Origin: Oikopleura dioica
Lineage: Eukaryota; Animalia; Chordata
DNA: 64,000 nucleotides
Direction of reading: 5' to 3'
Assembly: GCA_907165135.1 (NCBI GenBank)
Contig: OU015567.1
Location: 4,340,001-4,404,000, forward strand
Shown here: piece by piece, positions 35,545 to 38,515 of the stretch
Layout: every line of letters begins with the position of its first letter
Position numbering within the stretch: position 1 is the first letter of the stretch
The notes under the pieces: generated by a model
The model's database searches: none
Told to the model about the DNA's origin: nothing
What the model saw: the letters and a program-made list of their open reading frames with translations, nothing else
Translations under genes and position numbers: made by a program

Positions 35545-38515
35545 ATGTCCATAACAAAAACGGCAGAGTGGGCAAAACTGGCCGAGTTAGCCAAAACCGT
35601 CGGTCAGTCCTCTATTCGCGAGGCCTTCCAAGCTGACCCCAGTCGATTTGACAAGTTCAACATGAAACTGAACGAAGAAGGCAACGATTTTCTCTTCGAC
35701 TTTTCAAAGAATAGAATTGACGAAAATGTCATGGCGGAGCTGAGGAACTTGGCGAAAGTAGCGAATGTTGATGCCATGAAGAAAAAGATGTTTGGCGGAG
35801 AAAAGATCAATTTCACGGAAGATAGAGCGGTTTTTCATGTTGCTCTCAGACATCAAGGTAGATTGAAGCTCTAGAAAATGTCGGTAAGACGATGTTTTAG
35901 GCGATGAAATGTCGACCGGAGGCAAAAATGTCATGCCCGACATTCGCGCCGTCCAAGCTCACATGAAAGAGTTCTGCTCCGAGATCATCAGTGGCTCTTG
36001 GACGGGCTTTACCGGCAAAAAAATTGAAAACATCGTCAATATTGGCATTGGGGGTTCCGATCTTGGTCCTTTGATGGTCACAGAGGCTCTGAACAGGGCT
36101 GCACAATTGGATTGGAATCAATTGGTTTCCAATTCAATTGGATTGGATTGGTAAATTGGTTGGAAAATAGGCGGGAAAATCAGGTTCTGTCCAATTGGAA
36201 AGCCCTTCCAATTGGAAAATGGGGGTCCAATTGGCAACTGGTCGCCAATTGGTAAATTGAAAAAATGATTGGATCGAAGCACCTCTTTCCATGCGGAAAT
36301 GCCGGATTATGCTTGAATCAGTGCCTCAAACGACCAGTTGGGCAATAATTTTCGATCTTTAAGGGGGGGGGGGGTCGACGAGAATTTTTCAGGGGTGATC
36401 GTAATTTCGCTTATACTCATAACCGCGATATGAAACTTATATTTTTAGAATTGTCAGATCCTCCCGAATCTGTTGAGCCTAAAAACATTTCATAAAAATG
36501 AGATTTAGGGGCTGAAATTGAGAAAATTGTAAAACAAATGGCCATTTTTGACGCATTTTCGCGAAAATGCCCCTGCTTTGAGGGGATTTTTGACCGATTT
36601 TTTCTGGCCAAAATTTTTTCTAGTTTTCGCCGCCTGATTTTTTCAACCCTTTTCTATCCACCAGTAGACTCTAATTTTCCCTATCTAATCCAGTTTTCCC
36701 GCATTTTTGGTCACGGAAATCCCGATTCTCGTCGACCCCCTTAAGTCAAAAGAATTGGAGTGATGGTGGGATTTTCGATAAATAAGGTCTAGAAAAATAA
36801 GTTTCGAGGGACTTTTGATTCAGTTAGAGGAGCAAGAGGGCAAAAATAGTTGTAAAGAATCCAAAAATTAGCGAAATTTAGGAATTTTCTTCGGCGAGGG
36901 CTTGCCAAACTGCCCGAAAGCGCCGAATTGCCCGAAAGTGCCCATATTGCCCAAATGTCCGAAATGCCCGCTCTTGCCCGGCCAAATTTTGGGAGTTGGT
37001 TGGAAAAATCCAATTTTTTTGCCAATTGTGCAGCCCTGCTCTGAAACCGTTCAAAAATCACCTCGGAATTCATTTTATTTCAAATGTTGACGGGACACAT
37101 GTCTCTGAAGTTCTGAAGAAGTTGGATCAAGAAACGACTCTTTGTATAATTGCTTCAAAGACATTTACTACGCAAGGTGAACATTTTAGAACATCCGCTA
37201 AAAAGGTGGTCTTTGAAGCTTCAAATGATCTTGCCGATCAAATGTATAGGCTAGATAGGTAGAATTATTTGATTCCCTTTGAAATTAGCGCGAGCTTTCA
37301 AAGAGTATTTCAGTCCACAAACGAACTTAGTTTTTCAGAGACAATCACAAACGCGAATTCCGCCAAGCGCTGGTTCCTGTCGAAAGCTCCTGAATCCGCC
37401 ATTGCCAAGCACTTTGTTGCGCTTTCAACGAATAAAGAAAAAGTTGCAGCTTTCGGGATCGACACAAAGAATATGTTTGAGTTCTGGGACTGGGTCGGTG
37501 GAAGATACTCGCTTTGGAGCGCGATTGGTTTGTCGATTGCTCTGTCTGTTGGATTCGATAATTATATGCAGCTTCTGAAGGTAGTATTTCCCCTGTATAT
37601 TCATCAGGATTGAGGGTCTTTCCCATTGAAGAATCTGTCGATAAGGGTGAATTAAGGGCGCCGCTTCCATGGACCAACATTTCCTCAATGCTCCAGCGGA
37701 GTCAAACATTCCCCTGACCATGGCTCTCCTTGGCGTCTGGTATTCCAATTTCTTGGGCGCCGAGTCCCATGCCATGCTCCCCTACGACCAATACCTGCAT
37801 CGATTCGCCGCGTATTTCCAACAAGGGGACATGGAATCGAATGGAAAATACGTCCGAAGAAACGGCGATGAAGCTGACTACCAAACCGGGCCGATTATTT
37901 GGGGAGAACCGGGTACAAACGGACAGCACGCTTTCTATCAGCTCATTCATCAAGGAACCAGGTTTCTTCCTATGATGATGATCTTGAGTTTCAACCATTA
38001 TCTTCAGATTAATCCCCGCAGATTTTATCGCAACTTGTAAGAGCCACAACAACCCGACTGGAGATGGTCTTCACCACCGGCTTCTTCTGGCAAATTTCTT
38101 GGCACAGACGGAAGCTTTGATGCTCGGCAAATCAAGCTCAGAAGCCAAGGCTGAACTTGAAAAGGCAAACATGCCGGCGGAACAGATCCAGAAGATTTTG
38201 CCGCATAAAATCTTCAAGGTATTAGTACTATTATTTCTCAATGATTACCCTTTTATCTAGGGTAATCGACCAACAAACTCGATTCTTCTCTCTGAACTCA
38301 ATCCCTTCACGCTGGGCCAGTTGATCGCCGCATACGAGCACAAAATCTTCGTCCAAGGCATCATCTGGGACATCAATTCCTACGACCAGTGGGGAGTCGA
38401 GCTTGGCAAGCAACTTGCGAAGCAAATCGAGCCCGAAATTCAAAAAGGAAGCACAACTACTGCCCACGACTCTTCGACCAATGCCTTGATCAATTTCATT
38501 AATGCTAGAATGTAA
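35545..38515 (+). CDS. GPI: Glucose-6-phosphate isomerase
   Basis: Unambiguous motifs [86 protein letters not shown] and [17 protein letters not shown]. Exons 35545-35857, 35901-~36096, ~37034-37176, 37339-37580, 37657-, to 38515. Confidence 0.98.
36094..37038. mobile_element. CAGGGCTGCACAATTGG-family TIR element, copy 2, inserted in the GPI TEALKP codons
   Basis: Perfect TIRs, 7-bp TSD CTCTGAA (36087-36093 / 37039-37045), homology to 21940-22831 with an internal deletion and a nested insertion. Confidence 0.95.
36363..36740. mobile_element. TTAA-TSD MITE with GG...CC termini (Kolobok-like), nested in the GPI element
   Basis: TTAA at 36359-36362 and 36741-36744; TIR GGGGGTCGACGAGAAT; absent from copy 1 of the host element; second copy at 39879-40249. 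Confidence 0.88.

Follow-up and report, generated by a model that had tools for sequence, protein, structure and literature searches.

A transposon in a coding exon of the Oikopleura dioica GPI gene is absent from other DNA sources and is not an established intron

Does a DNA transposon that lies within the coding sequence of a housekeeping gene act there as a new intron, or has it broken the gene on the one haplotype that was assembled? The question is raised by the glucose-6-phosphate isomerase gene (GPI; 35545..38515, + strand; recognized by matches to the Pfam PGI profile and by its joined coding sequence [CDS]) in a 64,000-nt stretch of the Oikopleura dioica genome (contig OU015567.1, positions 4,340,001 to 4,404,000), which we call the window and to which all coordinates below refer unless a contig is named. 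A sequence-only reading of the window had proposed that a terminal inverted repeat (TIR) element divides a GPI exon, that the ends of this element serve as splice sites, and that a relaxed spliceosome allows the family to which it belongs to enter exons almost harmlessly. We find that the common GPI allele is an uninterrupted exon and that the element cannot be counted among the established introns of GPI.

The element, 945 bp long, occupies 36094..37038 (+ strand) in GPI exon 2. Its left TIR, CAGGGCTGCACAATTGG (36094..36110, + strand), and its right TIR (37022..37038, - strand) are perfect reverse complements of one another, pairing at 17 of 17 positions, and it is bounded on both sides by the 7-bp target site duplication (TSD) CTCTGAA (36087..36093 and 37039..37045). 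Coordinates, TIRs, TSDs and the division of the Pfam match all agree with the structure that the sequence-only reading had described, and that reading was also correct in that removal of the element plus one TSD restores a continuous gene: seven exon pieces (35545-35857; 35901-36093 and 37046-37176, two parts of one exon, with the element between them; 37339-37580; 37657-37961; 38008-38218; and 38261-38515) then join into a CDS of 1650 nt encoding 549 aa, with no internal stops. Consecutive pieces match positions 1-53, 58-118, 119-162, 164-244, 249-346 and 430-486 of the PGI profile, and the element falls between profile position 118, at the end of the left piece of exon 2 (58-118), and position 119, at the start of its right piece (119-162). 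The PGI domain is divided by the element, and no domain residues are lost. The five ordinary introns of GPI are all GT-AG, are 42-162 nt in length, and have donors that follow AAG or CAG in the exon.

We evaluated whether other DNA carries the insertion by aligning DNA runs X25, X27 and X28, each from a different study, together with one RNA run, to 32300-38199. A contig from each of the three DNA runs joins 36085 directly to 37038, skipping 952 nt (the element plus one TSD); at the joint, eight letters fit both sides, these being the TSD plus one coincident G. The depth of these empty-site contigs (100.1, 103.2 and 121.3 for X25, X27 and X28, respectively) equals the flanking single-copy depth, and in X27 a single unbroken contig of 2724 nt covers 34996-36085 and then 37038-38199. 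The empty-site contigs come from the genome and not from cDNA, since ordinary introns and intergenic DNA are retained in them. That they run unbroken through the site speaks against any well-covered filled allele in the three runs.

The same result was obtained from DNA of the open ocean. A protein search with the open reading frame (ORF) that spans the junction led to a protein (P0001) that is 97% identical across the GPI part. Two contigs from marine metagenomes, L001 (2945 nt, from Tara) and L002 (1343 nt), encode it; each can be aligned to the window at about 94-95% on either side of the site, where the two aligned parts overlap by 8 nt and the element is missing. The ORFs of more distant lineages (P0002, P0003 and P0006) are likewise continuous through this position (...EALKPFK...). 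The insertion is therefore absent from all five of the other DNA sources (X25, X27, X28, L001 and L002). When a 2101-nt query was compared with indexed runs, the top DNA run shared 0.57 of its words, which is the fraction of the query that lies outside the element; the flanks alone account for this share, indicating that no indexed run holds the GPI copy. The ORF that crosses the filled junction (35909-36151), when looked for as an exact match in public assemblies, was not on record. Neither the three DNA runs, nor the two metagenome contigs, nor the word shares (at most 0.57) gave a sign that the insertion is retained in populations. We conclude that the insertion is polymorphic, being rare or perhaps private to the assembled haplotype. 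The sequence-only reading had itself named an empty expressed allele as the observation that would speak against a functional intron; that the site is empty in every other DNA source supplies half of this observation.

What happened at this site was a real transposition, as is evident from the TIRs, the TSD, the empty site and the existence of other copies. With its TIRs, constant TSD length, empty site and dispersed copies the GPI element is a class II (TIR) transposon of the non-autonomous kind: it encodes short ORFs only, and because no long transposase-like ORF was found anywhere in the 64,000-nt window, we regard it as unable to move itself. Its terminus reads CAGGG, and subterminal repeats of the form CCAATTGG lie inside the ends. 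The 17-nt TIR sequence recurs at five sites of the window at three or fewer mismatches, as compared with 0.08 expected from shuffled sequence.

The second complete copy in the window, 892 bp long (21940..22831, + strand), is intronic, in a host gene assigned as kelch-like from weak Kelch matches downstream. It carries a different TSD of the same length (ATAAGCC, at 21933-21939 and 22832-22838), so that a TSD of 7 bp characterizes the family. Over their common parts the two copies share about 95% identity, and the GPI copy is without about 300 bp of subterminal repeats that the other has near its right end. We had considered that this second copy might also be exonic, sharing orientation and phase with the GPI copy, as a flanking ORF enters the element; this was ruled out by contigs L003 and L004 of a related lineage (88-90% identity), in which just 38 nt separate the exon matches to 21591-21838 and to 22852-23304. 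The 38-nt spacer indicates that the second copy sits in a pre-existing intron, which it enlarged, and the proposal that the family enters exons harmlessly finds no support at the level of the family. The intron in question (21839-22851) is about 1013 nt long here and about 38-50 nt in the related lineage (L003, 249-286), the excess being mostly the 892-bp copy; the short form of the intron seems to be without an obvious GT donor and has a possible GA donor, ACG^GATTTC (the caret here and below marks a splice boundary).

Beyond the window, the contigs that cover the GPI element have 9 to 27 times single-copy depth, corresponding to a family of roughly 10-30 copies. Marine metagenome contigs of the ENA yielded two more copies (L049 and L050), at 92-98% identity to the left end of the element. 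In these low-coverage contigs (L049, 1-290, and L050, 1-358) the copies adjoin open frames of 96 and 83 codons, respectively, on the opposite strand, one of which terminates at a GTAAGT donor; neither frame matched a Pfam family or gave a meaningful Atlas match. Judged by these frames, the two copies may be further exonic insertions in reverse orientation. A scan of JGI metagenome contigs with the 17-nt TIR gave 44 single matches, none of which extended into the element by blastn, and these were set aside as chance matches. Our literature search found no description of this TIR family, nor of introners (intron-generating elements, discussed below) in O. dioica.

If the element were kept in the transcript, translation would read through 20 element-encoded codons and then meet the stop TAA at 36152..36154 (+ strand; ORF 35909..36154), which overlaps a donor-like site, TTG^GTAAAT, with an intron start at 36151. 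Three ways of splicing most of the element out would keep the frame, and all would use the candidate acceptor in the right TIR, TTGTGCAG^CCCTG (AG at 37032-37033), just ahead of which there is a run of T (37014-37020). A GG-AG intron from the candidate donor CAG^GGCTGC in the left TIR (36097-37033, 937 nt) gives EALNSPALKPF (+5 aa), and a GA-AG intron (36091-37033, 943 nt) gives EALPALKPF (+3 aa), so that the arithmetic of the sequence-only reading was correct for both; a GT-AG intron from 36151 to 37033 (883 nt) would add 23 aa. These routes must be judged against the number that any such region offers: with every G-starting donor in 36060-36400 and every AG acceptor in 36900-37070 allowed, there are 40 in-frame, stop-free GN..AG pairs, including the three just described. 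The splice-like ends to which the sequence-only reading had drawn attention are thus present in the TIRs, and they are no more than is expected by chance.

The quality of the candidate sites is uneven. At GA-AG sites of O. dioica the AG upstream of the donor is highly conserved and an A follows the GA (PMC7072748); the candidate GA donor, TCT^GAACAG, is without the upstream AG and is a poor match, and the candidate GG donor, CAG^GGCTGC, matches on its exon side only. Nine placements of an intron would restore the GPI sequence exactly, with ends GC..CT, CT..TG, TC..GC, CT..CT, TG..TC, GA..CT, AA..TG, AC..GA and CA..AA, none of which ends in AG, and AG-dependent splicing would therefore leave a scar right after the GIGGSDLGP...EAL stretch. 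For the GG-AG route this scar would always be 3 + 5 bases of the element plus the 7 bp of the TSD, or 15 nt, and so, by arithmetic on the sequence, neutral to frame at any insertion phase. It would be attractive to suppose from this that the TIR family is a built-in, frame-neutral intron cassette, with a CAG^GG donor on the left and a TGCAG^CCCTG acceptor on the right, and that the GPI insertion is an intron at its birth in an essential gene of glycolysis, tolerated by a larvacean spliceosome that accepts GG; we regard this stronger proposal as improbable.

RNA under this species label bears little on the matter. The RNA run that we aligned (X5, 2026, raw reads) yielded three reads at 90-95% likeness and no joints, and probably comes from a different cryptic lineage. 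RNA runs X2-X24 shared no words of the locus, with the exception of a plankton metatranscriptome (share 0.08), which suggests that RNA deposited under this label stems from other cryptic lineages. Moreover, even RNA that skipped exactly 952 nt would be ambiguous, since the empty allele is present in DNA.

The GPI copy also differs from its relatives by two small deletions. One C is missing at 36118 and another at 36134, relative to the second copy of the window, to L049 and L050 and to all of the contig depth in X25, and the two deletions together bring the GTAAAT donor at 36151 into frame with the TIR acceptor. The possibility that they are compensatory changes was weakened by the finding that the deleted state is present in part of the element depth of X27 and X28. 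Descent from a source subfamily with this state, or residual error of long reads or assembly, is as likely as adaptive change.

Within the GPI element lies a second insertion, a miniature inverted-repeat transposable element (MITE) of 378 bp (36363..36740) that has perfect 16-bp inverted repeats, GGGGGTCGACGAGAAT, and a TTAA duplication at 36359-36362 and 36741-36744. Its unoccupied TTAA target is visible both in the second copy of the TIR family (21940-22831) and in L049, and DNA contigs skip it by 382 nt, from 36358 to 36741. Another copy of this MITE lies at about 39882-40245, with TTAA on both sides. The MITE family (about 365-380 bp) is very abundant, with contig depths of about 90-190 times the single-copy depth in the three DNA runs.

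Another TIR element, unrelated to that in GPI and 3 kb from it, occupies 32355-33130. It has an 8-bp TSD (AGCCAATC) and ends CTAGGTCTAGG...CCTAGACCTAG, and it breaks an ORF beside a weak match to the RA domain (RGL). Contigs of X25 and X27 skip this element (776 nt) at single-copy depth, indicating that it, too, is a presence/absence variant.

How, then, is the interrupted GPI allele best explained? We think it probable that a recent insertion allele, rare or private, was captured by the assembled haplotype, and that it disrupts GPI unless it is rescued by splicing. A non-autonomous TIR transposon, with the TTAA MITE already aboard, would have moved into exon 2 of GPI, a single-copy gene whose ancestral form would be the uninterrupted one seen in all the other sources. 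An mRNA that kept the element would end its reading frame at the TAA at 36152 and would encode a product of about 185 aa that contains 165 GPI residues and only the initial quarter or so of the PGI domain; this would amount to a null allele, tolerable when heterozygous. In single-animal assemblies of O. dioica, heterozygosity is reported at about 3.6% and the haplotypes are merged (PMC8008620), so that a heterozygous disrupted allele could readily be the one that is assembled, and in a gene-dense genome new insertions that selection has not filtered are expected to strike exons often. Several observations weigh against this explanation. Logan contigs may lose rare variants, so that X25, X27 and X28 could hold carriers at low frequency; O. 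dioica does splice GA-AG, GC-AG and GG-AG introns, which make up about 11-12% of its introns (PMC8008620; PMC7072748); the acceptor of the right TIR, a run of T followed by TGCAG, is good-looking; and routes that keep the frame exist on paper.

The last three of these observations are also what would recommend the idea that the allele carries a newborn, introner-like intron, in which nearly the whole element is spliced out through the AG at 37032-37033 from a donor at CAG^GG (36097), CT^GA (36091) or TTG^GTAAAT (36151), giving a working GPI with 5, 3 or 23 additional residues just past the GIGGSDLGP motif. Each of these routes is in frame and free of stops; the CAG context of the GG donor is the exon side of GPI's own donors; the CDS of the carrier allele is undamaged apart from the insertion; the metagenome copies adjoin open frames; and precedents are known from Fritillaria and, more generally, from introners (PMC11282704; PMC12130899). 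We nevertheless consider a newborn intron rather unlikely. The absence of the insertion from the five other DNA sources gives no sign of selective tolerance, and with 40 in-frame routes in a small region the existence of routes weighs little. The GA donor is preceded by TCT and not by the conserved AG, the intron would be 883-943 nt long as compared with 42-162 nt for GPI's introns (6-20 times longer), and both of the splice sites within the TIRs would be enclosed in a perfect 17-bp duplex of the pre-mRNA. The scar would follow immediately upon a conserved stretch of the protein, and the other copy in the window lies merely within an older intron. There is also the question of whether the insertion belongs to the germline at all, since it could reflect an artefact of assembly or consensus (a long read that is chimeric, for example) or else an event, somatic or de novo, that affects part of the DNA. 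In favour of such an origin, the filled junctions occur in no indexed public run and their ORF is not on record, and the two 1-nt deletions could be long-read errors left over in a repeat. A perfect 7-bp TSD, of the same length as that at the second copy, and exact ends are, however, the marks of transposition and not of a chimera, and the similar private insertion in RGL points to real variants of the assembled animal; we regard a non-germline origin as very improbable.

On the present evidence the GPI insertion is a coding-disrupting variant on one haplotype, and its chief practical value is as a warning. Exons of essential genes hold private transposon insertions in this assembly, a second one lying 3 kb away, and gene models or calls of 'new introns' that are made from this assembly alone will mislead unless they are compared with other individuals and with RNA. 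If it were true that carriers splice the element out and make working GPI, then this locus would offer a dated and still segregating birth of an intron from a DNA transposon, in a housekeeping gene of a chordate.

Introners, which Huff et al. are said to have described in 2016 as transposons that generate introns, are one known system with which the GPI element can be compared. Their existence is established for algae, for dinoflagellates and for some animals, among them the tunicate Styela clava (PMC12130899). The GPI element is like them in being a TIR element in a coding exon whose ends, together with the TSD, offer splice-like sites, of which the GG-AG route would leave a scar of 15 nt. 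Introners are defined, however, by demonstrated splicing and by many intron copies, whereas the GPI copy is not fixed, allows no exact removal with an AG end, and has its companion in the window in an older intron; on present evidence it does not qualify as an introner. In Fritillaria borealis, non-canonical introns are derived from MITEs (Henriet et al. 2019, as summarized in PMC11282704 and PMC13326754), and among the intron classes given in the latter summary AG/AC and AG/AT ends, with YAY triplets, predominate. The likeness to Fritillaria is that both are larvacean tunicates with TIR/TSD elements at species-specific coding positions and with a spliceosome that tolerates non-GT donors; the difference is that none of the nine placements that would restore GPI exactly has AG/AC or AG/AT ends, and that the ordinary introns of GPI are GT-AG in five of five cases.

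With respect to the transposon itself, the ends would make the element hAT-like or P-like, as a tentative assignment. Ac, a hAT element, begins CAGGGATGAAA, and hAT elements typically have a TSD of 8 bp. The terminus CAGGG of the GPI element fits the hAT terminal motif YARNG, whereas its TSD, unlike that of hAT elements, is 7 bp in both complete copies, with the eighth base mismatched in each. In its general characteristics the GPI element is like the polymorphic, MITE-like TIR transposons, with which it shares TIRs, a TSD of fixed length, multiple copies, subterminal repeats, a nested MITE and an exact empty site.

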